From Phallusia mammillata (lineage: Eukaryota), in the NCBI GenBank assembly GCA_965637545.1, contig OZ281495.1, forward strand, positions 28,396,001-28,460,000: a stretch of 64,000 nucleotides of DNA, read 5' to 3'. Below are positions 31,227 through 61,660 of this stretch, piece by piece. The notes beneath the pieces are model-generated. The model did not search any database, was not told where the DNA came from, and saw nothing but the letters and a program-made list of their open reading frames with translations. How positions within the stretch are numbered: position 1 is the stretch's first letter; each line of letters opens with the position of its first letter. Made by a program: the position numbers and the translations under genes.

Positions 31227-31491
31227 TTAGGAGATGATGCACCTTTTTTTTCTTTTGTTGTTCCGGTTCTTGTTGCTTAATTTCCAATTCTTGTTGTCTT
31301 CACCGCTCAGTTTCCATGTTGGTCTCGGTGTTCTTCCAGAAGCAGATAGAACCACACACGACACAAACAACCAGGAAGATCACAACCACGATCATGCCCA
31401 TATATTCACTCGCCAGTTTTTCACTTAACTGAAGACTAAACGATGCACTAAGAACGGTAACAGCGATTGCCAATCCAGTTACTTCAGGCAT
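31227..31491 (-). pseudogene. TM + charged helix + CaaX microprotein, copy A (in-frame TGA plus 1-nt homopolymer shift)
   Basis: MPEVTG..YMGMIVVVIFLVVCVVCGSICFWKNTETNMETER*RQQELEIKQQEPEQQ. Removing one A from the A8 run gives KKKRCIIS* (stop at 31227-31229). Confidence 0.55.
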
Positions 31492-34400
31492 ACTGTTGTT
31501 TGTTCAGGTATGGCAACAAGTTTTAAGCAAGCTTTTGTTTTTGCCACTATTTCTACAAAACGATGTTCATCAAATTATCAGTTCCATAGAATTGCTCTGA
31601 AAAAGAACGTTGTGGGTAACATTAATGTAAGATTTTGGCATAACAAATACTGTAAACATTAAGCTTCACTTGTTTACACAACCAATCTCGCAGACTAAAT
31701 ATATCCTCAAAAAGCGTCCACTGTAACCAGCAAGCTTTTATCGAAAATGGAATGTTAATTTCATGCACATTGCTAGTTCAACGCTAAAGCACCTTTTTCT
31801 ATTTCAACTTGATGATTTTAATTAAGGGTAACAAGTTCGTTCAGCAAACATTTTCACTTCTGCATATTTGATTTATTTCGTCAAACAGAGGTATGTTTGC
31901 AAACGAAGAAACCATTGCCATAAAACCAAGTTCCAATCTGAAAAGATCGCTCCACTTTAAGGACTTTGAATCGTTCTTCACTTAAAAGTATGCTATTGGG
32001 ATTTTGGTTGGAAGCTATAACCCGGCAAATGTTTTTTTTTAATTTTTAGTAACATAGCTTATTTAAACCGCAGGAATTAATGTCCACCTATGATCTATTT
32101 CTCACAACAAAAAACTATCGTATTGAAAAACTGTCCTTATAGTGCATAAAAAATTAAAAATCTGACCAAAATCCTTTCTCATACATTGATAAGCAAATGA
32201 CCTTGATAAGTATAAGTACCTTATTATAGACTATCACGTCCTCTTGGTCTGTGATAAATCCGCAACAAACACCTAAAGTTTAAGGTAAAAGCTTAGGAAC
32301 AATTTGCAGACGTTGCAGTTCGCAGCTTTGTACACGAAGCAAAGTTATCCCGCCTGGGGATTCCCCGGCCGATAAATAACCTACGAGGTGTTTTTTGACC
32401 ATTTGCTGATCACAAAAGTCTGCTTTTAGCGCACGTACACATGTTTGCCGAACCTATTGACGCTATAAACCATTTTCGAACTTGCTGCTGTCAACTGTTG
32501 TGTATTTTGTGAGGAAAGCAGATTTTCAAATTACATCACCAAGTTGTGTAAAGTATATTGCAGTACGATTCGCAATGTTCTTGATGACAATGTTTAAGGT
32601 CTGTTTTTTATCGTCAAACCAAGCAGAACTGTATGAAAATGGACAAGTTTACCTTTTCGGTCGTGATTGTTTACTTACCTTTGTATATCAACCTACTGTT
32701 ATTTGCCTATGTGGCCCAAAAAATAACCATTCCAAACTTCAGGATCTTTTATTATTATCAGATCAAGTTCCTGTGTTTTACTTCTTCCGTTGTTGTTGTA
32801 TTAGCATAATTTCGACCGCTATTATTTCGCATGTGGACAACAATACAGTATGTATCTTTTTGGGCCACATTCAAGCGTTCAAAATAAGCCTGAACTTGTA
32901 GAAATGTAGAAAACGGCTTGTTAAACTTAACTAACCCCAAACGTCACCGCAATCCATCGTTCAAAACCAATTTGTTACTATTACTGCATTCCAGTCCATT
33001 TAAAGAATGTTAAACAAAAGACAGTGAATAGAAGTAAAACAAATGCAATGAATAAATGTAAGGTTTTAAAATATATTTTCCTTTAATTTAGTTGTGCACA
33101 TACACCCCTGTACAATTGAAATTTATGCATGTTTTATGTGTTTTTTTTTAAAACTGATTACGATTTCTATGAATGGTTGCAATTTCAGTTTTAAAACTAG
33201 CAGTCTCAAGGCCTTGAAGTTTTTGAAAAAAAATTGGATGAAATTTATCGAAATACTATGGGACCGTTAAAAGGAAATGTCTGTGAAAGTTCATATTAAT
33301 GTACAATAGCTGTATGTTCAGTAATCGTTGCAATTGAGCTGGTGGTCTTTGTTTTTCCAACTGCATGCTGGACGCCATTAAACTTCACGCATTAAAGCGG
33401 AAACAGTTTGTTACGTAACAAACACCATCTATTGTGGCGGATGAATATGTGCACTTTACATGTAAGTACAGTATTCAGTTAAACCAGATGTTGGTTGAGA
33501 TTGTTGTTGGTTGAAGTATTATTGCAGCAAAAGTTTGTTAAAAAGTATGATTAAATGAACCAGGCAGTTACATGTTTGAGCACCTGACCAATGTAAGTAA
33601 GTTTGCTGCATTGTTTGTTGTAATATTACAGCTTTTGAAACAGTCTGCGTTTGTGTATGAAACTGTGGAGTCAGTACATACAATCCTGTTTACAAAAGTT
33701 GTAAAAAAGTGACAAAATCATGGTTACAACGTATTATGTATTTCCCAGCTGCAACTATACTGTAGCATAAATGATGTAATATATTAGCCAGCACTTGCAC
33801 CCACATTTTATTACATTGCTGTACTGTTGCTACAGTACCTCAAATTCAGAAAATTGACATTGATTGGGCAGGCGCTTTTTCGGTTGGCATTTTGTCAATT
33901 TGCCCGCAGGATTTCAAATACCTTTTTCTTGTATAACTAGGTCACATTGGAGCGGTCGAGGCTTTATTAGGCAGCGGCATCGTGTTAGAAACGTGTAAAA
34001 AGTAGAGCAGGGGTGGCCAACCTGCGGCTCTTTGCCTGGTTTTATTCGGCTCTTACGTTGTTTTTGAAGTTTGGGGCCTCTGTGGATATTTTGATTGGTT
34101 TGTGGTCTCTGTGGATATTTTGATTAGTTTGTGGCGATCTGGTACAAAAATTGTTAAATTTGAAATAAAGCTATAACAATTTTGCTTTTGAACAAACTTA
34201 CTATGAACTGCAACAGTATTTGGCAAATAACTTGATTATGACGACAAATATTCAATTTTTGAACAATGAATGATTGCTCATTTTTGCGTACAATGCGAAT
34301 CAGAGAAAAAGCAACAGCAATGTTTACAACAAGCTATATTGTTCCAAAATTAATTATGTTTCAATCCGTTTTTCGGGTTATGAAGAACGATATGTTTTAT

Positions 34401-37400
34401 GGGCAGTTTGTCTCTTGGTTTTGTTGTGGTGCGACGTTTAGAATTAATATCTGGCGCAGGTATCTGTGTGTGAGGAACACCCCTGAAGTAGAGCAACATA
34501 AAACAGGTGTTTACTTTAAGGAAATGACGATAAAAGGATAAGGCAAATGACACGCTTCGATGCGTATTAGTAAACACGGTAGCCTGGTCGACACAACATC
34601 CTGTTATTCTACGTTTGTGTGGGAACTTGCTTGGTATACCATTTATTATCATTTTAATCTCAACAATATAAAGTCCAAAAGCAGTAATGATTGTTTGTTT
34701 TGGGGCAACCATATTTAGTTTTGCACCCTGTTGTTTAGGCACTCACTTCCTCGAATTGTTTGTGCAATACTTTAAAGCGAACGTTTTTTAATCAGATTGG
34801 CCGCCACCTGATGGCGCCATTAATGCATTGAAGAAACGCGATTACCATATATTGAGACAAATTCCGCGACAACTATTTTCAATTGAATATTGCATATCTC
34901 GGCACTGACTCTAAAAATTTTAAGGTCAGTGTTACCAATGTCACACTACTTTCTTGCCAATGTCACCCTACATATTAACATTGATAAAAGATCTTAACGA
35001 ACAACTAATACAAAATATCAATGCCAAACATTGTTTATGTTTTACATCAATCAACGATAACAATTTGGTTACAGTTAATAAATCGAAAAACGTTTAACAT
35101 AAATAATTTAAGGTTTATTTTTCTATTTTTTACTTCCACAGAAAAAAATGTACTGCGCTAAAGTGTAATGTATCATACTGTTATTGGCAGTGTCTAACGT
35201 TTTCGTAACAGATTAAAATTTGAACAACATTCATAAGCAATCAGTCCATTTCAGGTCCTTGACCTTTCTGTTGTTTAAGGTTGTGCACTATTAATTCTGC
35301 TGCAATCAGGCAACATGAAACTGTAAGGTAAAACTTTTTTACTGCTTTAGAAATACACAAAATGTTTTAGTGGGCTTGTTTTGTTACTCCTGTAATACCC
35401 ATATAACACAATTGTGGTCGTTATATAATGCTAATTTCCCACGTTTGTAAATTCTAGATGTTTTGGTCATTCTACAAAACGTTTACTTACCATCTACAAC
35501 AAGTGATTATCAACGACAAGTGATCATCTATCTTCTTTTCAGCAAAAGGTCAGTGATATATACTAGGCACCCACAACAATTGGTTGGCATTACGGCCTCA
35601 GTTTTTCCTTTTGGAGGTTTGAGATGTGGCAGGTCAGTTTTCAAGATTGACCTTTCTAGAAATTGTTTAGCTGCAGCAATAATCGCTGATTTTTTATAGG
35701 TCATATGCAAGATGAAAGCGGCGCCACACGTACTGTTTGATGTTTTTTTGTTTTTTACTGCCTGACGCAATAGGAAGATAATAACAATTTAAACAGTTTT
35801 TGCTGCTTGAAACTTATCGCAGTTTTAGTAATCGGGTACAACCATCTTTCGAATGCAAGGTGCAATCAGTAAAGCTCGTGTTGACCAGTAAATATCCTAG
35901 CTGTGGTTTCCGACTACAGGTCGTGCTTAAGTTGCAATAATTTTTTTTTGATTTTTGGTGGTATTGTTGTAAGGTGGTCTGGTTCCATCTTCATTCGTTG
36001 CTTTATACACTACTAAAAGATTGTTTAACCTAGAAATTGACCAAGCAAATGTTTATGTCGGGTGTTACCAAGAAATGTGCTCGTATATTTATCCAGAGTT
36101 TGTTTTTTATTATTTATGAACTTTAGTTAAAAAAAACTGGGACTTAAACAGTAGCAACGTATATTCACCCAACATGACATTGGTTGTGTCCAGATTGCGA
36201 ACCAGCGCGCATTATCGCGCACCGTAAGGGTTCGGGCACTTTTTTTGTCTTCCTTCTCAGTACATCTTGTTGTCAAAGTCGGAAAACAATTCAACGCTGG
36301 CGAGGCGTTGTGAACTGCATTACATAAACGAAATCACTAATGCGTAACAAACAAGCGTCACGTGCTAATCACTAATTATGCCTCCAATAAACCTTCGTCG
36401 TTAAGGCGCTGTTAACGCGCCTACCCTCCGCCGTCTTTTGCGACGGTTACAATTACAATGACCTGGCGTCGACGTAGAAACGTAATGGATGTGTTTGCAT
36501 TTTTGCAAACGGTTGCAGCACACAATTACATTGGTTCTAATGGCCCGATATAAATGACAAAATTGGATTTGAATCTGACTGAATTCGAATCCAAAGGATT
36601 TAACATTTTTAAACAACCCTCTCTGGGCACAATATTTTTCCTCTTTATATAGAGATCATCGAACCGAGAATATTACAGATTACAACATTTAAATACAAAT
36701 TATGTTTCGCTGTTAAAAAAAAAAACAATTCAACACTGTATCACACTAAACAAACTGCACGTGCATTTTACACACGAAACAGTTTTTTTTGAAAAGGCAA
36801 AGGCAAAGAAGCATGCGACAAAATTTGCGTTCTGATTGCCTGTAAGATTTTTTGTAGAAGTATTGCATGTTGCAAGAGAATGCACAACCTGGTTATTTTC
36901 TAAGGGACACTTTAAAGAATTCACGTGACAATTTGTTAGATTCGGTGATTTAAAACTTGAACATATTTTTAAAAGTCATCCGCAGGTGGTGGTTGGGTTA
37001 TATTGTTAATTCTGTACAAATTGAAACTAAAGTCTTGATCGTTTAGTGTATTTAACTCGCCGATGGTAAACAACAGCTGATAAGGTTATTGTTTGCTCGG
37101 AACGTCTTTTGTGTGGTGATTTGATTATGAAGAGATCAGTCTTGCCAATGTTGCGCCTATCTCAAAGCTGACTGCCTAGGTCAATAGTCAAACGAAAAGC
37201 GAAAACAACCGACATGCAAAACCTTTAGGATATTGCCACGTGCTTTCTCTGTTTGCGATCAACAGACCTTGTTCATATAAAGCCGCGATAAAGACCATAA
37301 TCGTGGAACTAAGTTACATGGAGTGCTGATTTTTTGTAAGAACCTTGTGCAATTCTCATTGACCTTATTAATGTTTGATTACTTGTTGATAAATTTATGA

Positions 37401-37465
37401 ATTACGAAAAAGGAATGGAACGATATTTGTTTATTAACTGAGTAGTGGTGTAGTTTAACTTTTTT

Positions 37466-37909
37466 CAACATTTGCTTGTTTGCGACGTGATTTAAAAAAT
37501 GAATGCCAGTGAAACCTCTTTATTAACTACACGAGCTGTGATAACGGAGCTGTAAATTGGACACTTTAGAGTTTTACAACATTTGCTTGTTTGCGACGTG
37601 ATTTAAAAAATGAATGCCAGTGAAACCTCTTTATTAACTACACGAGCTGTGATAACGGAGCTGTAAATTGGACACTTTAGAGTTTTACAACATTTGCTTG
37701 TTTGCGACGTGATTTAAAAAATGAATGCCAGTGAAGCCTCTTTATTAACTACACGAGCTGTGATAACGGAGCTGTAAATTGGACACTTTAGAGTTTTACA
37801 ACATTTGCTTGTTTGCGACGTGATTTAAAAAATGAATGCCAGTGAAACCTCTTTATTAACTACACGAGCTGTGATAACGGAGCTGTAAATTGGACACTTT
37901 AGAGTTTTA
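37466..37909. repeat. Tandem repeat, 4 x 111 bp, near-identical
   Basis: Units start at 37466, 37577, 37688 and 37799, with one substitution in unit 3. A single diverged unit occurs in the paralogous block at about 50470-50560. Confidence 0.95.
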
Positions 37910-38848
37910 GACCATGATATTGTTACGGAGTTATTTTGGACCCGAACTGCCATGGGCAATGTCAATAACGGCTCTCAACTTAAAGCCAAAGATACCAAGC
38001 ACTGGTTTAATTAAATTTAATTGGCGGCGCAACTTTATTAAAACTACAAAAGCAACAGCTATGAAAGTACGTTACAATTAAAACAATTAAAAAACGATTA
38101 ACACTTGGTGACCCAAAAACACCTCGCGTTACTTGCGCCACCCACAGAAAAAATGTATTTTACAAAACCAAAAAGCAGCGCATTGCCGGCCAATCAGTGC
38201 AAGTCTTGCAGCCCTTAGGGCGGTGGTTCTCAACTCAATTCAGGTCATGGACCACTAGTCCGATTAAATAAATATTTTGGACCAGTCCACTTTTAAGCAA
38301 AGATAGAAAAGCATCCACCACAAGCGTGTTGTCTTGAAATATTTTTTTTTCAACACATAATTTTGTTTTAAGGAGAGATAACAGATAACAACAAATTGCC
38401 AATAACTTGGATAAACTTTTTTTTCTTCTGAATATTCAACGAATTATTTGCAACTAACTTATTTCCAAACTAGTCCTGTGGACCACCCAAAAAGTTACCA
38501 CTAGTGCACCAAATCAAACAAAAGAGAAGAAAAGAAATGCGCATGACAGTGCCAAATAAGGAAAACAAGTATCCAAAAAAAATTGCGCATGACCAAAATA
38601 TATGGTCACAGTATAAATGAATTTTCAAGTGGAATAAATCGACCTTTTTTTATTTATGTATATATATATATATATATATAAATGTACATATTGTATGAGC
38701 CAAAGCTAAGCGTAGCCAAAACCAATTTGGGCAAACTTGCTGCGGTTACTATTAGTATGCTACGAAATGACACAGCATATTATGTGCGTATATAAAGCGA
38801 CTGCACATCAAATCAAACGTATTTAACACGACCTAAAAATTTCTATAC

Positions 38849-39166
38849 TTACACAATATTGCACTCAGCATCACGTCTCCTGGGATACTCGATTTGAAGT
38901 TGCCTGTCCTGTCTCTTTCGTTCTTCGAGGACTAACTCAGCTTGTCTGATGGTGTGTTGTCGTACTTGCTCCCGTTCGTTGGTTTCTACGAGCATGCAAA
39001 ACCGGATAATCCATGCGATTGAAAAACAAACCACAGCCGCAAAACACACGGACAAAGCAAAGTCACTAATACAAACAACCACAGCCGCGAGACACACGGC
39101 CAAAGCAAAGTTACTAATTCCGATGTGTATCTGTCCAAATCTAGCAAAAATAGCATTTTCGTCCAT
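38849..39166 (-). CDS. TM + charged helix + CaaX-like microprotein, copy B (105 aa, intact, duplicated hydrophobic segment)
   Basis: MDENAIFARFGQIHIGISNFALAVCLAAVVVCISDFALSVCFAAVVCFSIAWIIRFCMLVETNEREQVRQHTIRQAELVLEERKRQDRQLQIEYPRRRDAECNIV*. Clear paralogs at 47.0-47.3 kb and 61.2-61.7 kb. Confidence 0.65.
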   Translation of the reverse strand: MDENAIFARFGQIHIGISNFALAVCLAAVVVCISDFALSVCFAAVVCFSIAWIIRFCMLVETNEREQVRQHTIRQAELVLEERKRQDRQLQIEYPRRRDAECNIV

Positions 39167-41835
39167 TGCGTACTTGTCCAACTTGGTGCGACAAAGTAAA
39201 AGCATAGAGCCAATAAATGATAAGCTGCAGACAGTGCACACTGATTTGGTGCGACAAAGATTTGCGAAAACTTAACAATGCAGTTTTTCGTTACAAGGTA
39301 TATACAACCAGATTAGTTTCATTTTATCTAAGGGCGCTAGTTACCTGAAAAAAATCACTTTAACTAACATACAAAATGTTCAGCTTGTACAACAACTCTT
39401 ATTAGATTTATTAGTAAGATAAATTTGCAGATTAACCTAACAGCTTTCTAGCGTTGTAAAATCCTTCACATGTAAGCAACCCAATTTCTGCTATCGTGCT
39501 AAAAGCCCAGAACATGCGACTGCAATATTTCGTTTTTTTTACTGTTAAAACTCTGTATTTGTTGTAAACTTTTTTGTTACTCGCTCTTTATTCAGCACAC
39601 GTAACACAAATTGCCATTCGGGACTAGTGATAGAATAATTTAATTCAGTTTAGGAGGATCAGAAATTTGCTGGTTTCCAAATTTATGGATTGCTGAGTAA
39701 ACAACATGATAGGTTTACAGGACAAAAGGATACTTGAATGATCTTTTTTGATTGTGTTTGATGACGAGTGCGTGTTTGCACTCCGAAGAGCAACGACGGT
39801 AAAGTCGTTGAAGACTAACCTAACAGCTGTCTAGCGTTGTAGAACCCTTCACATGCAAACAACCCCAATTCAGCTAGTGCGCCAAGTACAACCACAATGA
39901 AACCAAACTTTCAACTGGACCCGAAACTTTGGTTTCGCTCACTTCGTTGTACTGGTTTGATGGAGCTTATATTGTTGTTACTGCAATATTTCAAAATAAA
40001 CGTTAGGTAACACTATGGTAAACGGTCTTGTTAATAAAATCAGATTGTTAGATCTAAAACGGTAAATGCAGTAAAAGATAACTATAATACACTGAGAAGC
40101 CATCTTTTTCACTTCCTCATTTCTTATCTAATTGAGCAAACAAAAAGATTAATGATGTAAAGAAATGCATTTGCGTTACTCAATGAAGTGCCAGTCTAAA
40201 AATGTTTCATTTTAATCAGGCGCGTACTCAAATGAACCACGCAGCTTGAACGCCTTGGTCTGTTCTAGGGTTTTAGCCGAAATCTACAGTCCTGCAAATA
40301 ACGAAAGATGACTGCATTGAACAAAGAGATTCAGCCTTCCATTTAAACACTTTTAAACTCTCACGTCTCCAACTCTGGAGAGAGCAAATATGCTTGACTA
40401 GACTGTCCGCCTACGTACAATTTCAAGACATTGCAAACAACGGTTTTCCACCTGGGGAATTCCCGACTGATGGCGTTGAAATTGTGCAGTCAACCGTTGC
40501 AGAATTTTCGTGAAGTAAAAGACGCCACTTGCCTCTTCAGCAAAATTGCAACATTTTAAGGGCCTTTTTTACTTTAGTTTCTTGTCTTTCTTTCCTCGCC
40601 TCCATTGGTATGAAATAGCGTATTTGTAAACCCAAGGCTATAGCAGCTGCATCTAAAGTTTTTCGCAAATTATAACTACCTCGCTGTGTGTCTAAACAAA
40701 AGTGTGCCAAAGCTGAAACTCTGTTGTGACTTTGTAAAAAGTAAGATTTTCAAATATATTTTCCTTCCAGATGCCCAGATACACTATCAGGCAACTAGAA
40801 ATACATGCACCTTTCCTTTTTATATTGGAAAACATATAATCGATATTGCCACATTGTGAAAACAGTCAAATAAACGTCTTAGTTGTAAAATGCCTTTCTC
40901 ACTTGTACGCGCAAAACATATTTTATGGTTTTTTTGTTCCTAAGTTTGTAAAAGTATTTCAACTGCAGATATTTTCAACAAACTAGAAAACGTTTCCTTA
41001 CCATACCGTCAGTTTTCAAGATAGCACGTAATATTCATAGTCGGCTACTGCCACCGTCAGAATGCGAGTAAGTTATGGGTGCTCATCGGTAAGTTATGGG
41101 TGCTAATTTAAGCATCCCCTCGCACGCGGTACTGTTTACTATTTTCTCAAAAGCAAAAGAAATATCAACACTTTTACGCCAAGTTCATATTCCTGGTGCG
41201 TAAGACTCAAAACAACTTTATTTAGACTGTCATGTTAATTATATGTACACAGAGCCAGGTATTGTTAAGAACTTTTGCACACTTTCAGCTTGACTCCAGG
41301 CCAAGATCCTTAATATGCTTCGAAGAAGTATTTTTCAGTGAGTTTATTTGCTTGATTAACATAGTATTAATAGCGATAGCATGCTAACTAAGACAGTCAC
41401 TAAACTATTTGTTGAACGTTGTCACAGGGTTGCAAACAAAACAGGAAATTGTAAAACAGAAAATAAAAACTACAACCACATTGCCACAAATCTTGCCAGT
41501 TTTTATTACCGATTTTTTTTAAAATCTTATTGTCGTGAAAATTTCATGTAGTTTTCAGGCAAGTCGATTGTGATTTTTAGCTTAAGTGTGTTTTTAACAT
41601 ATTTTCCGTTGAAATAGTATAAATTCTTAGCAATAAGGCCAAATTCTTTGAAATAAATTGTAAACATAGTATTTTCGCTCAAATTTTTTAACATAGTGTT
41701 GTTACGGTACAAATCAAATCAATCCTTTACATGCATATCTAAATCTAAATGCTTTATAGGTAAAATGTCAGCAACAGAAGTGCTGTAAGTACCACAGGTT
41801 TAGCAATTGTACGTTAAGGGAAATTTTGGACGTGT

Positions 41836-42700
41836 TTACTTGGTCGCCTTTGAAAGCACCCATGAAGCAACGCGGACAAGAATATGCAGTGCTTCAGAAT
41901 AATGATTTTGCCATTTCGATTCTTCGTTCTTTCTGCGAGCCTCTTCTTCTTTACGAGCCTCTTCTTCTTTACGAGCCTCTTCTTCTTCACGAGCCTTTTC
42001 TTCTTCACGAGCTTTTTCTTCTTTAAGAGCCTTTTCCTTTTTACGAGTTTCTTTTTTATCCCTAGATTTTTTACGAGCTTCTTTTTCGCGGGCTTCTTGT
42101 TGTCTCCGAATCTCTTCTTTGCGAATATTCTGTCTTTTCCCTTCCATTTCTCGTTGAAACTCTTGTCCTTTCCTTTTCATGTCTATGTGAAACTCTCTTT
42201 TGTCCTCTTCAATTTCTCTTTGAAACTTCTGTCTTAGCCCTTCCATTTCTCGTTGAAACTCTTTTTTCCCTCTTCCATTTCTCTTTGAAACTCTTGTCCT
42301 TTCCTTTTCATGTCTATGTGAAACTCTCTTTGTCCTCTTCCATTTCTCTTTGAAACTTCTGTCTTTGCTCTTCCATTTCTCGTTGAAACTCTCTTTTGTC
42401 CTTTTCCATGTCACTTTGAAACTTCTGTCTTTGCTCTTCCATTTCTCGTTGAAACTCTCTTTTGTCCTTTTCCATGTCACTTTCAAACTTCTGTCTTTGC
42501 TGTTCCATTTCTCTTTGAAACTTCTGTCTTTTCCATTCCACTTCCGCCTCTCTGCGAGCCTCTTGGTTCACCCGTTCCGCTGAAAATTCTCTCTCGTATC
42601 GTGTTACAGTTTGTTCGTGATAGCAGCATAACAACGCAAACAGTACAATAACTCCAGGCGTGACACATTTCTTCCCGATTTGTCCAAGTCCGATGACCAT
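41836..42700 (-). pseudogene. Single-TM protein with 11/22-residue amphipathic repeats and an EEEARK low-complexity tail (about 288 aa if two 1-nt homopolymer deletions are corrected)
   Basis: ORF 42700-42314 (hydrophobic GVIVLFALLCCY, then QREMEEQRQKF-type repeats) continues into ORF 42486-41836 after single-A losses near 42330 and 42265. 66-nt DNA periodicity at 42361-42490 and 18-nt repeats at about 41935-42020. May be an intact gene with sequencing errors. Confidence 0.6.
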
Positions 42701-44350
42701 CGCGATACAATTTGTTTCCGTAATTTCTGTATTTTTGGAGTCTACCGAGCTTAATACAATTTATTTTAAAATTTGATGCTATTTGCAAAATAATTGAACT
42801 TGTACTTGTATAATGTAAATGATTTCTTGACAACATCTATTTCCTTGTTTAAAAACACAAAAATGGTTTTCCAAGCCCTGTGTTCTGTCAAAGAAATACC
42901 TCAATCAACTACCATTTTAGGCCCAATTGATAGTCCAACTTATCTTTGACTTCGAACCGTTATCAAGGACACCAAATAAACTTTTGAGACAAAGCTCGCC
43001 GGCTAAAAGCTGTCTCCCCAAAACGTCGCAAACGTTTAAAACACGTGCATGCACCCACTTTTAGGCACACATAACTAGGCCAACAGACATACGCCTATTT
43101 TCAGCTTTCTAAAAATGATTTCGGTATTACCTATTCTACAACAATGTTGTCTTCGATATACCCATGAATGTGTCAAAATTGCGCTAGAATCGTTAAACAC
43201 CCGAATGGCAAACCTAACAGGCTTAAACGGCTCGTAAGAGGAACTACAATTACAGGCAAAAAAATCTATGTCCTTGGGCCAAGTCACATGCGATCAACCC
43301 TTTAACGCAACAAAGCAAATCACACAAAGAGATGGGTGAGCTTAAAATTTTCCATTGACGACACGGCACATCGAAAAAAACATCCCGCGTTTGGCCAAGA
43401 ACGCATGGGTTGAGTAATGTGTGACGTCAATTGGCCCTGTGAAGCATTAGTTATCTGTGCGACTAAAACTACGCGATTACCTAATCGTAGGTTACACGTG
43501 CATTGACCTAAGTCAACCCAAAATTGACACCAGATACAAAATACGGTCGTTGAAATAATTTAAGTTATCCGAAATTTTTTAAATCTTCGACGTCAAAAAT
43601 TAAAAAAAAATAAGCCTGTGATTTTCTTCTTTCCTATGAGTTAAATTTGGGGATTTATGTTCTTGCACACAAGCATAATACGCAGCAAAGAAATGATCGT
43701 CAGTGTGGAAATTCCGTTGAAAGTTGAATTGACGATCAATAAGTTATTACAATATAGGCTCCCAATTTCTTCAAGAGAAAGGAATTGGCAACAATGCCTA
43801 CTTTGGGTCGCGAGATTTAACTTATTGGCATGCGCCAAACAACATATTAAAGACTGTTGAAAGAGCTAAAAAAAATTGATACATTATTATGCCTGACAGC
43901 AACAGTTTATTTAGCATTTTCAGATCCCTGTATTAAATCGTAGTTGTTGCGGTTGTCGAATAATTAGTATCTGGTTTTTGTTGTAGTGTATCTGCTTTTT
44001 GTTGTAGTGCTGGGCTTATTTTAAATTATTTTTTGAAAACTACTTTTGTGTGACCATTCATTCCAGTCGAAAAATTTTTTATTGCCTAGGCTTCTTTTCG
44101 TTGTTTTAGCCTAAATTGAAATTATACCGTATGTACTTTTGTAATGTTACAAAAACAGGTTGTGACAAAGAGTTCCTTGTATCTTTGTTTGTTGGATTAG
44201 ATCATACGTTAGTCCAATTACAACTATGCATTTTATTTCTTTATTATCTGTTCTACAGTATGGTTGTGTTCAAAGTCTTTTAGTTGGTTTTCTATTTTAA
44301 AAATTGTTAGCTTTTGACGTTTAGTTGCACAGCTTTAATACCGCATAATG

Positions 44351-44793: not shown

Positions 44794-44952
44794 TTACTGA
44801 ATATTACAATTGTCAGGTCCAATCGCCACTTTAATTTCCACTAGTGTTTTTTTCTTTGGTCTTCTGCCTTTAGCACCTTCAATTTGAAGTTGTACTCGTC
44901 GATAAAGTAACTCATTAAGCCTTTCCGATTCTCTGCAAAGGTCCAGTCTCAT
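44794..44952 (-). pseudogene. Deletion derivative (copy D) of the TM-CaaX microprotein: TM lost, C-terminal 52-aa frame ending CNIQ* retained
   Basis: The orthologous ATG at 44962 gives MEENETGPLQRIGKA*. The next ATG at 44952 gives MRLDLCRESERLNELLYRRVQLQIEG..GPDNCNIQ*, homologous to the C-terminus of copy F. Confidence 0.55.
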
Positions 44953-47049
44953 TTTCTTCCATTGGGTACTTGCATAACTTTCTGCAACAAAGATTTGCAA
45001 AGACTTGTTTTTGCAGTTTGCAGTTTTTAGTTACAAGAGTATAGGCAAACAAATTAGCTTTGTTATTTGCCTAAGGACGTCTGTTCCCTAGAAAAAAGTC
45101 ACTACAAAATGGCAATACAACGTACACAACAACTCTTATTAGAATTTATAGTTAGATAAATTTATAGATTAACCTAACAGCTGTCTAGCGTTGTAGAACC
45201 CTTTACAACCCAATTCAGCATGGTGCTACAAGCACAACGAAACCAAGATTTCAACGTGAACCGAAACTTTGGTTTCGCTCACCTCGTTGTACTGGTTTGA
45301 TGGAGCTTATATTCTTGGTACTGCGATCTTTCGAAATAAGCGTTACGTAACACTCCGGTCGAACAGCTTTTTCATAAAATCCAAATGGTGGAATTAAAGC
45401 GGTAAATACAGTAAAATATAACTTATACACTGAGAAGCGATCCTTTTCACCTCCTCATTTCACATGTACTTAAGCAAACAAAATCAAACCTGTATGCAGA
45501 TAAGGTAAGTGATATAAAGAAAAGCATTTTCGATACTCAATGAAGTGCCAATCTGAAAATGTAGTCTCATTTAAACCAGGCGCGTACTAAAATGAACCAA
45601 ACAGCTTTAACGCCTTGGTTTGTTCTAGGGTTTTAGTTGAAAACTACAGCCCTGCGAATACTGAAGGTGACTGCTTTGAACAGACGGATTCAGTCTTCGA
45701 CTTGAAGCAGTGGTTCTCTTTTTTATTGTCGGGGCCAAAAGGTATTTTTTAAGCGTGTAGAGCAAATAAGCGTGACTAGACTGTCCGCCTACGTACAATT
45801 TCCAGACATATTTGAACCGAAACAACGGTTTTCCATCTGGTGATTTCCCGACCGATAGCACTGAAATTGTGCAGTCAGCCGTTGCTGGATTTATGTGAAG
45901 TAAAAGGTGCCACTTGTCTCTTCAGTGAGATTGCAACATTTTAGGGACCTTTTCTCCTTACGTTTTTGTTTTTATTTCCTCGCTTGCATTGGTATTAACT
46001 AACATTTTTGTAAGCCTAGGGCCATAGAATCTACATTCCATATTTTTCATTTTGATGTATTAATGACATTGTCGATACGAGCCTCAAAATAAATCGCTGC
46101 CCAAACAATGAACGAAAAAGTTTACTAAACTTACCTCAAACCTATAAGCACAGCCCATCAAATGTCGAACCAATTTATAACTACATACCAGTGTGTCGAA
46201 AGTAAGCCAAAACTGAAACCATATTGATTGGAAATTTTGTACACAGCCAACAGCAAAACAAAATAGCAGCGCATTCCCGGCCAACCAGTGCAAGTCATGT
46301 AGCCCTTACGACATTGGTTCTCAACTCGTTTCAGGTCATGGACCACCAGTCCATTCAATAAAATTGTAAATATAGATAAAATAGCATCCACCAAAAGCAT
46401 GTTGTCTTGAAATATTTTTTTTCAATACATAACTTTATTTTAAGAAGAGATAACAGATAACAACAAATTGCCAATAACTTGAATAAGCTTTTTTCGTACT
46501 GAATATTCAACAAATTATTTGAAACTAGTCTACAATTGAACACAAAATATGTCCTGTGCACCACTCAAAAAGTCACCATGGACCACCAATGCCACAAATA
46601 AAACAAAACAGAAGAAAATAAATGTGGCAGTGCCAATCAGGAAAACAAGTATCCGAAAAAAATTGCGCATGACCAAAATATATGGTTACAGTACAAATAT
46701 TTAAACAACGGATATAAACCGACGTTTTTATTTATTTTTAGTACACGCAAAAACATAAAGGATTTATTCTTTGGATTTATTTACACCAACACACCCACAT
46801 ATATCTGTACATATTGTATGAGCCAAAAGCTAAGCGTAGCCAAAAACCGATTTGGGCGAAGTTGCTGTAGTTACTATTAGTTTGCTACGAAATGAAACAG
46901 TATGTTATGTGCGTATATAAAGCTACTGCACATCGGACCAAATGAATTTGACACGACAAAATAATTTCTAAGCTTTTCGCGTAAAATTATTTTGAGCGAT
47001 ATTTGTTTAATATGAAGCTTGGTCCAAGCAAATATGGTTACTGAATATA

Positions 47050-47316
47050 TCATTCAGGATCTGGTTTCCTAGGATATTCGATTTGAAGTTGCCTGTCCCG
47101 TCTCTTTCGTTCTTTGAGGACTAACTCAGCTTGTCTGATGGTGTGTTGTCGTTCCTGCTCCCGTTCCTTTGGTCCTACCATTATGTTCCACCAGATAATC
47201 CATGCGATTAAAAAACTAACCACAGCCGCGAGACACACAGACAAAGCAAAGTTACTAATTCCGAGGTACATTGGTCCAAATTTAGCATAAATACCATCGT
47301 TTCTATTTTCTTCCAT
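47050..47316 (-). CDS. TM + charged helix microprotein, copy E (88 aa; CaaX lost by an inferred TGC>TGA change)
   Basis: MEENRNDGIYAKFGPMYLGISNFALSVCLAAVVSFLIAWIIWWNIMVGPKEREQERQHTIRQAELVLKERKRRDRQLQIEYPRKPDPE*, followed in frame by TAT ATT CAG TAA (relic of C-N-I-Q-stop). Confidence 0.6.
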   Translation of the reverse strand: MEENRNDGIYAKFGPMYLGISNFALSVCLAAVVSFLIAWIIWWNIMVGPKEREQERQHTIRQAELVLKERKRRDRQLQIEYPRKPDPE

Positions 47317-47555
47317 TGTGTTACTTGCTGCGACAAAGATTTGCAAAAACTTAACAATGCAGTATTCAGTTACAAGAGTATCTTCCAGCAGATTATCTGT
47401 ATTACTTGTCTGAGGGCGTCTGTAAAAGTCCCTTCAAGTAACATAGAAAATGGTGATACAACATTCACAACGACTCTTATTAGAATTATTAGTTAGATAA
47501 ATTTGCAGATTAACCTAACAGCTGTCTAGCGTTGTAGAACCGTTCACATCACAAC

Positions 47556-49747: not shown

Positions 49748-52700
49748 GCTTAAGTAGAAGAACGAAATTTCTTTTCATTTTAATTTTATAATCTGTTAAA
49801 AATCTAACACTGTAAAAGGAAAGGAAAACATTTTAGTTTATAACGTTGCACCAGTTAGACGAAACAGTTTACAAAACATGCAAGATGTTGCACCAAACCT
49901 TGTATAGTATGTATGTACCACTCTTTCGGCTACACATAGACAATTTCGTTTCATTCATAAAACCATAGTTTTGTTGCGTTCGTCGGTGCATGTTTCAGCT
50001 TGTACACAAGTTTTCAAATATTCATATAGATTGTCCTAAAAACACAACCAGCCTAACGCGAAAACAACCGACATGCAGAACCTTTAGGATCTTGCCACAC
50101 GTATTCTCTGTTTGCGATTAACAACACTTGTTAAAATATAAAGCCGCGATAAAGACCTTAATTTAGGAACAAAGTTAACATGGAGTGTTAATATTTTGTT
50201 AGAACGTTGTGCAATTCTCCTTGATCTTACCAATGTTTGATTACTTATGGATAAATTAATCAATTACGGAAATGAAATGGAACCTTATTGGTTTATTGAC
50301 TGACCCATGGTGTAGTTTAACATTTTGCGTGATTTGTATTTGGACCAGGTTGATGTTAGATTTGCGCCTTGGTAGAAATCAAATAGTTAGAGTGCATCTT
50401 CAGCTGCAAAAACTTATTTATAAACTGTGAAATTTTTTGCCTACCTTCTCATTTTAACATATGACTGAACACGTTTGCCTGTTTGCGACGTGATATAAAA
50501 AGTGAATGCCAGTAAAACCCCTATATTAACTACATCAGTTGTGTTAACTGAGCTGGGCACTTTAGATTATTTGGACGCAAAATGAGTTATTTTAGACCCA
50601 AAATGTGCAAAGTCAATAACGGCTCACCACAAAAGTCAAAGATACCGGGCATGCACTGGTTTAATTTAGGCCGCGCAACTTTATTAAAACTACAAAATCA
50701 ACAGCGATCAAAGTACGTTACAATTAATTACAATTAGCACTTGGCGACTCTCAGCCAACACTTTGCGTTACCAGATTATCTGTATTACTTGTGTAAGTCA
50801 CTTGAAGATTTACCTAACAGCTGTCTAGCGTTGTAGAACCTTTCACATCACAACCCAATTCAGCTATAGTGCTATAAGCACAGCGAAACCAGGGTTTTAA
50901 CGGAAACCGAAACTTTGGCTTCGCTCACCTCTTTGCACTGGTTTGGTGGAGCTTGTATTCTTGCTACTGCAATATTTCAAAATAAACGTTAGGTAACACC
51001 CAGGTAGAAGGTCTTGTTAATGAAATCCAATCGGTGGAACTAAAGCGGTAAATACAGTAAAAGGTATAACTAATACACCACGAAGCCATCCTTTTCACTT
51101 CCTCATTTCACATCTACTTGAGCAAACAAAATCAAACCTGAATGCAGACAAGGTAACTGATGTAAAGAAAAGCATTTGCGAGTGCCAATTTGAAAATGTA
51201 GTTCCATTTTAACCAGGCGCGCACTAAAATCAACCAAATAGCTTGAACGCCTCGGTTTGTTCTGGGGTTTTACCCTAAATCTACAGTCCTGCAAATAACG
51301 AAAGGTTACTGCTTTGAACAAATATTTATCATGCCTTTTGAAATCATCACATATTTAGCTCTGAGAAAGGCAAATAAGCTTGACTAGACTGTCCGCCTAC
51401 GTACAATTTCCTATGACACGAAACAATGGTTTTCCATCTGGGGAATTCCCGACCGATAGCGTTGAATTTGTGCAGTCAACCGTTGCTGGATTTACGTGAA
51501 GTAAAAGGCGCCGCTTGCCTCTTCAGCGAGATTGCAACATTTTAGGGACCTTTTCTACTTTTAGTTTCTTTTCTTTCTTTCCTCGCCTCCATTGGTATTA
51601 ACTAGCGTATTTGTAGACCGAAGGCTATAGCAGCTGCTTCTTAAGTTTTTCGTGTTGATGTATTTCTGACGTCGTCTTTACGAGCCTCAATACAAATTGT
51701 TGCCCAGACAATGAATAAAAAACTTTGCTAAACTTACCTCAAACCTATAAGCATTAAATGTCAAACCAATTTATAACATTCTCACCACAAACCCAAATTG
51801 CTGAGTCAGCACCATAAACGCCTATGCTCCGTTGCGCCACCTACCAAAAATTCCCAGACCGGGCGCAAGCCAAAGTTCAGTGTTAGTAGCTCTACCATGT
51901 TTGTAAGTCCGGGAAATCTATAAGTAAGATAATTTGGTAAAAATATGCTAAAATACTATGAAAACATTAAACGATAATAAATGTGCTGTCTGTGAAACCA
52001 CGTCAACAAGCGCATATTGCATGTTAAGTAATCTCTACCACTCTTGATTGGTCTCTGCTTTTCAAGCTGCCTGTCGCTATAATACTTCACGTATCTAGGA
52101 GTAAACGACTTGTTACGTAACAAACACAAACTATTTTCGCGAATGAATATACAGGTTTATGTATTTTGACTGTAATTCAGTTAAGCCAGTTTCTTGTTAA
52201 ATGTATGTTTTATTTCAATGGTCGTAAAGTGAGTTAAAAAGCGTGAGTTAGGCAGTTACATCTTTGAGCACCTGACCATTGTCAGTAAGTTTGCTTCATT
52301 GTTTGTTGTAACGTTACAGGTTTAAACAAGTTTTGCGTTTTGTGCATGTAGATGTTTTTTGAATGCATAGTCTGTACATATGAACAGTTGAAAAAAGGTG
52401 AAAAAATTGGGTACATAAAAACATAACGCATTTGTCATTTAAATCCTAACAGTAAATGTGCGGTTGATACAGAACGTTTATTAATTAGGCAGTGTTTTTG
52501 GCAGGACGCTTTTTCTACTGGCAGCTATAGTCAATTTGGCCGCAGAACTTTGTTTCCAAAGTCGGTGCACGCTTTTTTTTTTTTTTTTGTAATTAGGTAA
52601 CATGCTGTTGTGTGGTAACTTGCTTGGTATTTTCCTTTTTATAATCAATCATTTAACGTTGTAAGTTCTGTAAACGCTAATGAATGTATATTGTCCAAAT

Positions 52701-53683
52701 CTGGTTGTGCGTTTATCATGCGTGTATACTGTGCCGGCTATGAAGTCATATTTGTAGGTGAATTAGACTTGTGTTGGTTTGTTTTCCATGTCTACAGCCT
52801 GTTGTTTAGGCACTCACTCCCTCGAATTATTTCTGCAATAATTTAAAGCGAGCTTATTTTTATCAGATTGGTCGCCACATGAAGCCGCTATTATGCATAA
52901 AAGAAACGCAACTACCTGATACTACACATTTTAAGGTTGGTGTAGCTTTCTTGTCAAGCAATATGTATGTTTTACACGAATCAACGACAACAATGTGGTT
53001 GTAGTATATAACGTGAAGTTAACAAATATTATAAGATATTTTTTCTCTGATAAAATTCACTGTCAAACTGTGTTGTTTTATGTATCACACTCTTTTCACA
53101 TCTTATAGACAATGAAATAATTGTGTGGAGACTGTAAATTGACTTTCCACGTGTACGCTGTATTTAAGTGCTAGGTTATTTATTGGTGTTTTCAAGTTTG
53201 TAAAAGTATTTCTTTTTTAGAGGTTTTCGCCCAACTACAAAATGTTTCTTTCCATCTACAGCAAGTTATCGTCCACTATTTCCATCATACAACTTACAAG
53301 TGTCGCTAAAAGGTAGGTTAGATGTCAAGCTATCTTGTAATAGTTATCAGTTATTAGCTAATTTGTTGAAAAAGTTTAAATGTGTTGTGTGCACGTTTAC
53401 GTTTGGTTAGGTTTCTAAAGTTGCCGTGACTGTCTTATAAAACCCATTAAAATAAAGATCGCATTATATAGTGTTTACTGTGAAAATATAAAAAGAATCT
53501 AACGTTTATTTTACTTGCCCGTTATCTGCTAAGAAAAGATAATGTTGCTAATGAAGTGTCATTAAATTTAGTGCGTGATTTACGTTTCACAAAGGTATAC
53601 TTGATTTATGTGGATGGTAGTTAATCGTTTCTCTACCTAACAGAATTGCCAAGGAACATTATACATATCTCGAATTAACTACA

Positions 53684-53902
53684 ATGGGAAATACCGTGTC
53701 AGTTTCATTCTGCGGATTAAAGGAAATCGAGGTGAAGGGAAACGCTACCGGTTTCTTCGGAGTGTTGGTACTTGGAGCCATTTCGACAAGTGGTCTTGTA
53801 ATTTCTGGGGCAGTTGGAGTTGTATATTTACTACGTGATGTAGTTGGAAATGTTTTAAAGGAGGTCGGGCGAGATTTGTTTGCCAAATACTTGGGTTTAT
53901 AA
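53684..53902 (+). CDS. Gly-rich hydrophobic microprotein (72 aa) with an N-myristoylation-like start (MGNTVS)
   Basis: Intact ORF; splice acceptor ctaacag at 53637-53643 upstream; AATAAA at 54042-54047; alignable paralog at 63392-63583. Confidence 0.6.
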   Translation: MGNTVSVSFCGLKEIEVKGNATGFFGVLVLGAISTSGLVISGAVGVVYLLRDVVGNVLKEVGRDLFAKYLGL

Positions 53903-54099: not shown

Positions 54100-55127
54100 A
54101 TAAAAACAGATAAAAGCATAAATCGTTTCTTTTAATAACAGAAATATATATTTCGCCTTAATAAATAGGCATCGTCAGTTTCTGCAAAAAAGCAAACATG
54201 TAAGGGGCTGTCGGTAAAAGTAGTAAAAAATAAAATAGTTAAAACACTTATAAAATTTAAAACTGTACAAATTAAACAACTGTGAAGCACAGAGGCAAAC
54301 CACGACTAGCGAGTGGCCACAAGCGACACGAGAAAAGGCAAGAAAAAAGAGACGTGATAAACTGATAAGCCATTAAAAAACACGGTGGGAAGTAAATAAA
54401 CCTCTAGGCGTGAAGAAACAAAACATTAAGGGGTAGAAACACAAAAATGGGATTACCTCACGCGCGGCAGAATCATTTTTTGTATGTTAATTTCGGCCTT
54501 GATTTTGTTCAGCCATTTATCTTCAAAAATATCTAAAAGATTTGGTGAAGGCATTTGCACAAACACAACATAAAAACACAGGTGGATGTGCGGTTTACGC
54601 TTTAATATCGCACTATGGTTCTCCGCGTAGTGGCGCAGTAGCGCAGTAGCGCAGCTCGGTCATTGTTTGCCGAGCAGTCGAACGTTTTCCAAGTGGCGCG
54701 ATGGGTATTCCACCGTGTGGAGAACTTGTTCTTGGTTTGACCAACATATTGCTTGCCACACTTGCGGCAAGTGGCCACATAAATGCCGTAGTTGCGACAT
54801 GTTAGATTTTGGCGAAGTTGGATACTGCCTGTGGGCGTTTTTAAAACGGTGGTATGGTACACCATAGTTTGGTGACTACCAAAATTGCCACATAGTGCGC
54901 ATTTTCCGCATGGACTTGAAGAGCCTGTGCCGTTGTCTTTGCCTGCCTTACTGATGGACAAAGCTTTGAAGTTGGATAGAAAGTGTGCCAGTGTGGGTGG
55001 CCTTTTGTATGTAATAGAAGCCAAAGGTTCCATAGCTTTCTCTTTTTGAGTCAATAAAACACAAGCAGGGAATGCCGTAGCCCAAACAATTCGATTTTGA
55101 GGTCTATTTTTGTCTTCCGGCCCAAAC
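54100..55127 (-). mobile_element. 5'-truncated Penelope-like retroelement (GIY-YIG endonuclease region plus 3' end)
   Basis: Translation ITYKRPPTL..PCGKCALCG..H..NLTCRNYGIYVATCRKCGKQYVGQT..RWNTHR..AALLR matches the Cys/His-rich linker and GIY-YIG domain of PLEs. After removing an 8-bp duplication it continues ..LDIFEDKWLNKIKAEINIQKMILPRVR* (stop at 54453-54455). A hammerhead motif lies downstream. The lower boundary is approximate. Confidence 0.85.
54139..54184 (-). ncRNA. Minimal type I hammerhead ribozyme in the Penelope-like element 3' region
   Basis: Minus strand CAGAAA-CUGACGA-U-GCCU(auuuauua)AGGC-GAAA-UAUA-UA-UUUCUG: both core boxes, a 4-bp stem II, a 6-bp stem I and a vestigial palindromic stem III. 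Confidence 0.75.
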
Positions 55128-55234
55128 CTTGTCGAAATGGCTCCAAGTACCAACACTCCGAAGAAACCGGTAGCGTTTCCCTTCACCTCGATTTCCTTCA
55201 ATCCGCAGAATGAAACTGACACGGTATTTCCCAT
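54602..55234 (-). CDS. Chimeric ORF (210 aa): 35-aa host microprotein N-terminus fused in frame to a PLE GIY-YIG endonuclease fragment
   Basis: The first 35 codons are identical to 53684-53788; the junction codon AG|G is at 55128/55127. An 8-bp tandem duplication (gcgcagta, 54633-54648) truncates the endonuclease C-terminus. Expression is unproven. Confidence 0.55.
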   Translation of the reverse strand: MGNTVSVSFCGLKEIEVKGNATGFFGVLVLGAISTRFGPEDKNRPQNRIVWATAFPACVLLTQKEKAMEPLASITYKRPPTLAHFLSNFKALSISKAGKDNGTGSSSPCGKCALCGNFGSHQTMVYHTTVLKTPTGSIQLRQNLTCRNYGIYVATCRKCGKQYVGQTKNKFSTRWNTHRATWKTFDCSANNDRAALLRYCATTRRTIVRY

Positions 55235-56499
55235 TGTAGTTAATTCGAGATATGTATAATGTTCCTTGGCAATTCTGTTAGGTAGAGAAACGATTAACTA
55301 CCATCCACATAAATCAAGTATACCTTTGTGAAACGTAAATCACGCACTAAATTTAATGACACTTCATTAGCAACATTATCTTTTCTTAGCAGATAACGGG
55401 CAAGTAAAATAAACGTTAGATTATTTTTATATTTTCACAGTAAACACTATATAATGCAATCTTTATTTTAATGGGTTTTATAAGACAGTCACGGCAACTT
55501 TAGAAACCTAACCAAACGTAAACGTGCACACAACACATTTAAACTTTTTCAACAAATTAGCTAATAACTGATAACTATTACAAGATAGCTTGACATCTAA
55601 CCTACCTTTTAGCGACACTTGAAAGTTGTACTGTTGGAGCAGTTGCAGAAGCCTAAAAAACGCGGAGGTGAAGTTTGGGTAAACATTAGCGTATCAACTT
55701 CTTCAGGCTCCAGCGTGTAAAGTCAGTAGAACAACTAATCAACAATAAGATCGTAAAAAGCAATCGAAATCACTAAGCCTTTTTACATGAGCGAATCGAA
55801 TCGTATCGTTGATGCGCATTGTGTGACGTCACGATTTCGATTCGCTAAAGCGTAAAATTACATGGTTGCCGAACCGAATCGCATTCAAGGGTTCAGCTTT
55901 GCGCAAAAACGATATGGTGGTCATTGCAAAGTGATATTCAAAGATAAGGCCGGATAATTGTTAATTTTAAAGTATTTTTAGACTTTTAGTCTATTCTTCC
56001 GAAAAAAATCTGAATTAATTTGTGTGCAGCAGTTGTTTGCGTCGAGTTTAGACATACCAAATGTATGAATTTGTTTATTGTGAACAGTTAAACCCTCAGG
56101 AATAGTTGGAAGAAATATTCAAAGTGTATAGATCACTCTGACTTCATTGTCCAATAGTAATAAGTGCTGATTTCTAAGTTGTACGTACTAAAACTGTTTT
56201 ACATTTCCAGGCCATGTAGCACATAAAAAAAATTCTTTATATGACTGTACAAATCTATTAAATTTGTTTCATTAGAATCTATTGTGGGTTATATGTATAA
56301 AAAACGACTAATTTGTATAAATTTGCACCAGTTGGACGAAAAACTCGATTAAATATGTAACTTATGGACCGTCCGTTCAGTGTATGGACCGTTCGTTCAG
56401 TATTAGCTACAAATTTCCCCGTTACTTTCGGCACCAAATTAAACAAACAACATATGGTTTCAAGTTGACGTAATTGTTCACAAAAGAGTTCTCCTAAGC

Positions 56500-57036: not shown

Positions 57037-57055
57037 TCCTAAGCGTATTGGCGCC

Positions 57056-57178
57056 TAAGCGTATTCAAACCACCTGTGCCGAGCGCATCGAGAATCGGAG
57101 AAGTCTAATACGCTTTGCCTTTTTTCTTTTTCGAAAACGAGAGAAATGCGTATCGAATAAGCGTATCGAATACGCTTA
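57056..57178. mobile_element. Short putative MITE adjoining the hAT element
   Basis: Terminal inverted repeat taagcgtattc / gaatacgctta with an internal gcgtatcgaat repeat; no clear TSD. Confidence 0.4.
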
Positions 57179-58172: not shown

Positions 58173-58241
58173 TTTCACAATTGTTTAAGAATGCTCGTGC
58201 TTCCTCTCTCGTTCGTAAACAGACCTCTCTCTCTCACACAG

Positions 58242-58380
58242 NNNNNNNNNNNNNNNNNNNNNNNNNNNNNNNNNNNNNNNNNNNNNNNNNNNNNNNNNNN
58301 NNNNNNNNNNNNNNNNNNNNNNNNNNNNNNNNNNNNNNNNNNNNNNNNNNNNNNNNNNNNNNNNNNNNNNNNNNNNNNNN
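58242..58380. other. Assembly gap (139 N)
   Basis: Run of N characters. Confidence 1.
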
Positions 58381-61242: not shown

Positions 61243-61660
61243 TCACTGAATATTGCAATCGTCGCGCCTTATTGCTGTATCAAACTCAAACATTGGTTTC
61301 TCTCTTCTCCTGCTTTCTGCACTTTCGATTTGAAGTTGTTCTCGTCGATGAAGTAACTCGAATTGCCTTTCCGATGCTCTGCAAAAATCGTCTCTTTTTC
61401 GTTCTTCCAAAACTAACTCAGCTTGTCTAATGGTGTGTTGCCGTTCTTGCTTCCGTTCCTTGGCTTCCAGTTTAGCTTGTTATTTTGTTCCTTTGCGCCT
61501 CTTGTTGTGTCTTCTCCAGCTCGATTATGTAACCACCGATGATGATTGCAAGCAAAAAAATACATACAGCAACGAAAAACAAGGACATAGCATAGTTACT
61601 AATTCCGATGTAAAAGTTTCCAAATCCAGCAAAAAATGCCTCATCTCTGATTTCCCCCAT
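61243..61660 (-). pseudogene. TM + charged helix + CaaX microprotein, copy F (138 aa if one extra A is removed)
   Basis: MGEIRDEAFFAGFGNFYIGISNYAMSLFFVAVCIFLLAIIIGGYIIELEKTQQEAQRNKI / QAKLEAKERKQERQHTIRQAELVLEERKRDDFCRASERQFELLHRREQLQIESAESRRREKPMFEFDTAIRRDDCNIQ*, with a +1 shift near 61480. Confidence 0.6.

Follow-up and report, generated by a model that had tools for sequence, protein, structure and literature searches.

Does the minus strand of a short region of the Phallusia mammillata genome encode a family of small proteins that are held to membranes at both ends? We addressed this question in a 64,000-nucleotide (nt) stretch of contig OZ281495.1 (C2), at C2:28396001-28460000 of an assembly of 240 Mb in 312 contigs. 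This whole stretch is called the window, and positions given without a contig name are counted from its first letter. The original prediction, made from the letters of this DNA, described a tandem family of microproteins with an N-terminal transmembrane (TM) segment, a charged helix and a C-terminal CaaX box. According to our analysis, the best explanation, taken as a whole and with prenylation included, is a lineage-restricted family of single-exon genes for small proteins that lie in a local tandem cluster and turn over by birth and death. We give this joint reading an even chance. The earlier observations mostly hold, after four corrections and the addition of one copy; the interpretation built on them is only partly supported.

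Family members were sought by six-frame searches of the whole genome with copy B, with copy G and with a family profile. These searches returned five copies and none other in the 240 Mb. All five lie on one chromosome within C2 28.43-28.49 Mb, over a span of about 56 kb, and contain or retain parts of an open reading frame (ORF) of the family:

Copy B, 38849-39166, minus strand: intact ORF of 105 amino acids (aa) (38852-39166, then TAA), ending in CNIV.
Copy D, 44794-44962, minus strand: broken, with the family start MEENETG at 44918-44962 and a C-terminal part at 44797-44961 that ends in CNIQ.
Copy E, 47038-47316, minus strand: ORF of 88 aa (47053-47316), with TGA at 47050-47052 at the Cys codon.
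Copy F, 61243-61660, minus strand: long type, split into an N-terminal part at 61475-61660 that holds the TM and a C-terminal part at 61246-61479 that ends in CNIQ (TGA).
Copy G, C2:28490774-28491190 (L003:1366-1785), minus strand: intact ORF of 139 aa, ending in CTIQ.

The four minus-strand paralogs in the window, B, D, E and F, stand where they had been predicted, and the motifs quoted for them are indeed common to them: B, E and F carry both GISN(F/Y)A and RQHTIRQAELVL.ERKR, and all four carry LQIE. The ends CNIV in B and CNIQ in D and F were also read correctly. G, the fifth and cleanest copy, lies 31 kb past the end of the window. Homology among the copies is far above chance, with whole-genome E-values of 6e-25 for B-E, 4e-28 for G-F and 1.5e-7 for G-B.

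The case for coding genes comes from the older pairs, in which the ORF is better conserved than its flanks. In global alignments, G is 59-64% identical to B or E in the ORF and 49-51% in the flanks; the corresponding values are 59% and 46% for B-F, and 76% and 68% for G-F. G can be aligned with B or E within the ORF only; outside it, BLAST gives no more than short stray matches. The ratio of nonsynonymous to synonymous change (omega, Nei-Gojobori), a comparison that had been proposed as a check, was 0.30-0.44 in the reading frame of the older pairs: 0.44 for G-B (p=0.007), 0.33 for G-E (p=0.0008) and 0.30 for Fc-Dc (p=0.001). The young B-E pair gave 0.84. When the same aligned columns of the older pairs were read in the two shifted frames, omega was around 1 (0.8-2.1) and never significant, which shows that the selection signal is not an artefact of picking protein-similar segments. 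Indels follow the same pattern. The 417 nt of the ORF contain a single one between G and F, namely the 8-nt deletion responsible for the break in F, whereas about 600 nt of flank contain 16 (binomial p ~0.002). The B-E ORF has two, of 6 and 48 nt, and neither shifts the frame.

Each of the five start codons has the context A at -3 and G at +4, and a short block 5' of the start is kept in all five copies:

Upstream block, 39251-39301 (B) and 47330-47381 (E), minus strand: ATAC..AAC.GAAAACT..ATTGTTAA..TTTGC..TTGT.GC.

This block of about 50 nt lies 40-95 nt 5' of the ATG. G and E are identical at 37 of its 52 positions, a score that none of 300 shuffles reached, and we regard it as a candidate core promoter or 5' leader. 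At the other end of the frame, the five copies share the position of the stop, and where the Cys is present its codon shows synonymous variation (TGC, TGT, TGC, TGC). On the strength of the ORF-only alignment, the frame-specific omega, the depletion of indels and the conserved start, upstream block and stop, we conclude that selection at the protein level has acted on this frame and most likely continues to act on it in G. It is likely that at least one gene of the family is live.

The copies differ widely in their state, and turnover by local birth and death in tandem, as had been proposed, is borne out by three broken copies among the five and by one repeat unit without an ORF. G and probably B are working genes, and E, F and D are probably recent pseudogenes or derivatives. 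In E, the tail reads DPE, then TGA, then the relic TAT ATT CAG and the ancestral TAA at 47038-47049, and the CaaX box is lost. The relic had been taken for xNIQ; it reads stop-YIQ-stop instead, the Cys codon TGC having become the stop TGA and Asn having become Tyr. For F, the predicted motifs and CNIQ end stand and the single ORF does not, because 8 nt that are present in G have been deleted from F between 61480 and 61479, which places the N- and C-terminal parts in different frames. The C-terminal part of F carries RQHTIRQAELVLEERKR, an extra ELLHRREQLQIE segment and the CNIQ end. D was likewise right in its LQIE and CNIQ and wrong in its membrane segment: the TM and the RQHTIRQ segment are deleted, and the start frame runs out of frame into stops. 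Its C-terminal part, of the long G/F type, is the sole family-like portion after the start.

Two further observations concern these copies. A 44-nt stretch at 61297-61340, within the ELLHRREQLQIE segment, is identical between F and G, though their ORFs are 76% identical overall, and 32 nt of its core show 94% identity between D and G, a pair that has no alignable DNA otherwise. These identities suggest gene conversion or constraint at the nucleotide level. D also has a secondary ATG at 44952, 10 nt past the strong family ATG, whose frame closes after 15 codons; translation from it would give a 52-aa helix peptide without a TM, carrying RRPKKK and CNIQ (polybasic plus CaaX).

B has the full layout. 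It starts with MDEN and continues with a short acidic N-end, a TM with GISNFA, a charged helix with RQHTIRQAELVLEERKR and QLQIE, and the CNIV end. The TM holds a 48-nt in-frame tandem duplication at 39024-39118 (TRF and alignment). The last residue is Val, not Gln, and a deletion sits immediately past the stop. We considered the B stop as a splice donor (GTAAGT overlapping TAA) and dropped this reading, since the other four copies have CAG-TAA or CAG-TGA without GT and the stop is conserved. The leader of B has also been altered:

B-leader insert, 39196-39244, minus strand: 49 nt, with the 14-nt direct repeat CTTTGTCGCACCAA on both sides.

This insert is a solo end of a palindromic repeat that is dispersed through the genome in about 800 copies, and it brings an in-frame upstream ATG of weak context. 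A genome-wide count of one 30-mer of the palindromic element gives 817 occurrences (424 forward, 393 reverse), among them many exact ones. Its copies often form inverted pairs 120-400 nt apart; at L021:1482-1668, perfect 67-nt arms surround a 53-nt middle, in the manner of a miniature inverted-repeat transposable element. The element is also found within contigs of sequencing runs that are likely RNA.

The flanks of B recur within the array, which defines the repeat unit:

Upstream flank of duplicated unit B, 39802-40665, minus strand: 864 nt, with homologs confined to the cluster.
Ghost repeat unit, 50055-51777, minus strand: homologs of the unit-B flanks are present and the ORF-bearing middle is absent.

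The ghost unit matches both the downstream flank of unit B (37196-38089) and its upstream flank. Because the 864-nt upstream flank recurs inside the cluster only, we read the array as a local segmental duplication and not as a dispersed element. A transposon reading was rejected since neither the ORF nor this flank occurs anywhere outside the cluster, and the lack of any further copy in the genome likewise indicates a local cluster. An assembly gap at 58242-58380 lies between the ghost unit and F. The copy closest to it is F, at 2.9 kb, and E is 10.9 kb away. The gap falls inside no copy and no family reading frame crosses it; the ORFs listed across it are artefacts of X. The gap may hide a further family copy. 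At 37461-37909, just downstream of unit B, a 111-nt sequence is repeated four times in tandem with 99% identity.

The family had been called undescribed, and our searches agree. A Pfam scan of B, E, D, F and a neighbouring reading frame, ORF C, gave nothing near the cut-offs; HIV-1 Vpu (PF00558) reached 11.9 bits with copy E (E = 0.2), below the gathering cut-off of 24. A word-based search with G among 5.8 billion proteins found none related, an exhaustive hidden Markov model (HMM) search with the family profile among 1.84 billion representative proteins gave 0 matches, and a look-up of the exact products of G and B found nothing on record. In the ESM Atlas, a feature search reached 0.76-0.77 at best, with bacterial hypothetical proteins only, which is below a useful level. 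Rfam has no family in 31000-64000. The family is thus an orphan, a status that holds for what these databases covered, as they may leave out P. mammillata and its nearest kin. Its parts (signal-anchor TM, charged helix and CaaX box) are of known kinds; their combination in a single-pass protein of 88-139 aa is unusual.

The predicted order of N-terminal TM, charged helix and Cys at -4 is kept in four of the five copies, with the stop position conserved. The protein would comprise four parts: a short, net-acidic N-end, one TM with a conserved G-I-S-N-(F/Y)-A face, a highly charged helix that continues the TM for 40-80 residues, and a disordered tail, about 18 residues long, that closes with Cys-x-Ile-Gln/Val. 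The TM reaches a hydropathy maximum of 2.5-2.9 (19-residue Kyte-Doolittle window), and 45-49% of the residues of the soluble segment are charged. With the family alignment, AlphaFold2 gave a single continuous helix over residues 3-121, with a predicted local distance difference test score (pLDDT) above 90 at 21-110, followed by a disordered, non-helical tail at 122-139 that includes the Cys box (pLDDT ~45-52). A coiled coil between the two anchors had been implied by the comparison with tetherin. The hydrophobic periodicity of the soluble segment, at 3.5 and at 3.6 residues, is no greater than in shuffles; from this, and from the continuous helix, it follows that the segment resembles a single charged helix more than a coiled coil. 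Opposite charges at i/i+3 and i/i+4 are marginally enriched (p = 0.046-0.12 versus shuffles). As read from the sequences, the N-flank of the TM is short and net acidic and the C-flank is neutral to slightly basic (+1). By the charge-difference rule, an acidic N-flank against a more basic C-flank favours an N-out/C-in protein, and this is the orientation that the CaaX box needs.

We then consider the box itself. Cys is found at -4 in B (CNIV), D (CNIQ), F (CNIQ) and G (CTIQ) and is lost in E. The a2 residue is Ile in all copies, and X is Gln in D, F, G and the E relic and Val in B. Farnesyltransferase prefers Gln, Ser, Met, Ala or Cys as X; Val, as in CNIV, is less typical for this enzyme. The stretch before the box has the character of a flexible linker, residues 122-139 being non-helical in the AlphaFold2 model.

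The original prediction had added a polybasic signal of the K-Ras4B type, which is not supported, as this reading rested on copy A (31227-31491). A had been presented as a distant member of the family, and no such homology is detectable: the hhalign probability is 2.8% and every search missed A. Its KKKRCIIS end lies in another frame than its TM ORF, and a CaaX box would require a frameshift. Since Cys at -4 ends 30 of the 689 stop-to-stop frames of at least 40 aa in the window (4.4%), the CIIS ending of A is within chance. ORF C (41836-42700), with a TM and 11-mer repeats, was also rejected as a family member (hhalign probability 1.5%). In both X1 and X2, runs whose even coverage of the examined stretch marks them as DNA, a contig connects 41666 with 43848 through 29 other letters and so skips the whole of ORF C. 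The depth of this contig is 65 versus 94 in X1 and 349 versus 409 in X2; it may represent a second haplotype without these 2.2 kb, or a paralogous place.

The human prostacyclin receptor, with an isoprenylated CaaX box on its G-protein-coupled receptor tail, is a prenylated integral membrane protein (PMC3145543), and CNIQ is described in PMC3188499 as the Rap2a C-terminal peptide crystallised in human farnesyltransferase (PDB 1tn6). Because CNIQ matches this peptide and the receptor gives a precedent, a double anchor is chemically and topologically coherent. For the family proteins, we infer both prenylation and topology from sequence, and the immune or self-recognition role that had been suggested for them is conjectural. 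The TM would insert into the endoplasmic reticulum with the N-end outside and the C-end cytosolic. Farnesyltransferase would then modify the Cys, followed by cleavage of aaX and methylation. The farnesyl group, a weak anchor kept near the bilayer by the TM, would fasten the distal end of the rod to this membrane or to one closely apposed, and the result would be a strap or spacer on the cytosolic face, of roughly 8-12 nm.

Several points weigh against this explanation. Transcripts of B or G had been proposed as a check, and none were found: 12 runs of the same species that we guess to be RNA (small, of unspecified tissue and kept as contigs only) contain 0.00-0.02 of the sampled B or G words. 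The two runs at 0.02 (X3 and X4) touch, on 38300-44200, the dispersed 48-nt repeat at 39196-39243 only and nothing of ORFs B or C. This result counts against strong, broad expression and is no proof of silence. Three of the five copies (E, F and D) are broken, and B bears the leader repeat insertion, the TM duplication and the altered X residue (Val). B and E evolve neutrally, their differences falling 13/13/15 by codon position; this young pair is uninformative, or one of its members is already free of constraint. At the protein level, farnesylation of the Cys is read from the CaaX sequence, and the N-out/C-in orientation solely from a small difference in flank charge judged by eye. The databases searched hold no homolog from another organism against which to judge conservation of the Cys.

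These points bear on what else the locus could be. One alternative is a dead family: the ancestral gene was functional, and all present copies, G and B included, are unexpressed relics that decay in a region prone to duplication. Such a history accounts for the old purifying-selection signal, because the ancestral gene was functional, and it agrees with the missing transcript contigs, the visible damage in E, F and D, the omega of 0.84 for B-E, the repeat insert in the B leader and the ghost unit without an ORF. We nevertheless hold it to be improbable. G keeps a clean frame of 139 codons, whereas its flanks differ from those of F by 16 indels in about 600 nt and by ~32% substitutions; the ORF has one indel, and this is on the F side. 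G also retains the Kozak context and the upstream block, and the RNA runs are of the small, contig-only kind described above.

It is unlikely, in our view, that the genes are real and the Cys is not a prenyl acceptor. The proteins would then be N-in/C-out (type II) with a lumenal or extracellular disulfide Cys, or CxIQ would have another role, and one anchor would remain. The small flank-charge difference leaves room for this, as do E, which holds an otherwise open 88-codon frame without the Cys, the less typical Val at X in B and the frequency of Cys at -4 by chance in the window (4.4% of frames). However, the distance from Cys to stop is kept in four copies across a synonymous divergence (dS) of ~0.8-1.0, and the stop position in all five; a2 is Ile throughout, a proven farnesyltransferase substrate has the same CNIQ, and the preceding tail is disordered, as in CaaX linkers. 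Moreover, there is no signal peptide, and together with the acidic N-flank this favours N-out.

That the ORFs arose by chance in duplicated non-coding DNA, their common peptides reflecting recent segmental duplication only, is already disfavoured and very improbable: the B and E units, 80-87% identical over ~2.5 kb with their flanks and barely better in the ORF (85%), and the absence of any seen expression would fit, but deep pairs conserve the ORF only, omega is below 1 in the reading frame only, indels are depleted in the ORF, and a frame of 139 codons stays open in DNA of 36% GC.

With a prenylated, single-pass microprotein family as the preferred explanation, its closest counterparts can be compared part by part. 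The likeness to the Rap2a-type CaaX box lies in the identical CNIQ of D and F and the CTIQ of G, with Cys four from the end after a disordered linker. The difference is that the family has no GTPase or known domain, is already anchored by a TM and matches Rap2a in the tetrapeptide only, its prenylation being putative. Like the prostacyclin receptor, the family combines a TM protein with a CaaX box on a C-terminus that would be cytosolic, and its tail could be pinned to the bilayer; the receptor has seven TMs and a short tail, whereas the family has one TM, a long charged rod and 88-139 aa, and there is no homology between them.

Tetherin (BST-2), to which the family had been likened, is a type II TM protein with an extracellular parallel coiled coil and a glycosylphosphatidylinositol (GPI) anchor. 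Both have a helix between an N-end TM and a C-end lipid anchor, putative in the family, and both evolve fast. The putative anchor of the family is, in contrast, on the opposite side of the membrane, a cytosolic prenyl group instead of GPI. We found no homology to tetherin at Pfam cut-offs or in the HMM search over 1.84 billion proteins, and no GPI signal of the tetherin type: the family tail is polar and ends in CxIQ, without a C-terminal hydrophobic signal. Since the 3.5/3.6 periodicity is lacking, the analogy is topological at most. The helix can also be set beside the ER/K single alpha-helix (SAH). Classic SAH segments are ER/K-type spacers in which E and K/R alternate densely and form i/i+4 salt bridges. 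The family segment is similar in being one unbroken helix, 45-49% charged, without a hydrophobic seam and with slight i/i+3 and i/i+4 enrichment. It is less charge-dense and richer in Gln, and its enrichment is marginal.

A broader claim can be put together from these comparisons, namely taxon-restricted microproteins that are membrane-integral at one end and farnesylated at the other, with a stiff rod of 8-12 nm along or between cytosolic faces and with birth and death of an immune- or recognition-like kind. They would form a cytosolic counterpart of tetherin-like double anchoring, in a nursery of ~100 kb that houses two other families of small TM proteins. All these parts together we consider quite unlikely.

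The surroundings of the cluster hold other small frames. At 53684-53902 on the plus strand lies an ORF for a Gly-rich hydrophobic microprotein, with a relative at L015:3284-3520 on the minus strand (C2:28483284-28483520), between the window and G; the two are 33% identical (E = 2e-10) and have VY.LRD..G..LK.VG in common. The region of ~100 kb carries at least three unrelated families of small TM ORFs. An inverted duplication of 98.8% identity (53281-53790 versus 55128-55638) surrounds a 210-aa ORF at 54602-55234 on the minus strand. This ORF has what we take, by eye only, to be a GIY-YIG-like motif (GIYVATC...YVGQT) as in Penelope-like elements.

If the copies are not expressed, the cluster is an ordinary decaying array of duplicates. 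Should G and B prove to be expressed and farnesylated, nature would provide in them a rare single-pass protein that combines a terminal TM with a prenyl group at the opposite end; prenylated integral membrane proteins are few, and those known to us are receptors or transporters of the multi-pass kind. Such a protein would offer a compact model of the influence that a second, weak lipid anchor has on a helix near the membrane. The cluster itself is an orphan small-ORF family in the middle of its turnover, in which one copy is pristine, one is altered, three are broken in different ways and a further unit is empty, and is useful for the study of the birth and death of microprotein genes.

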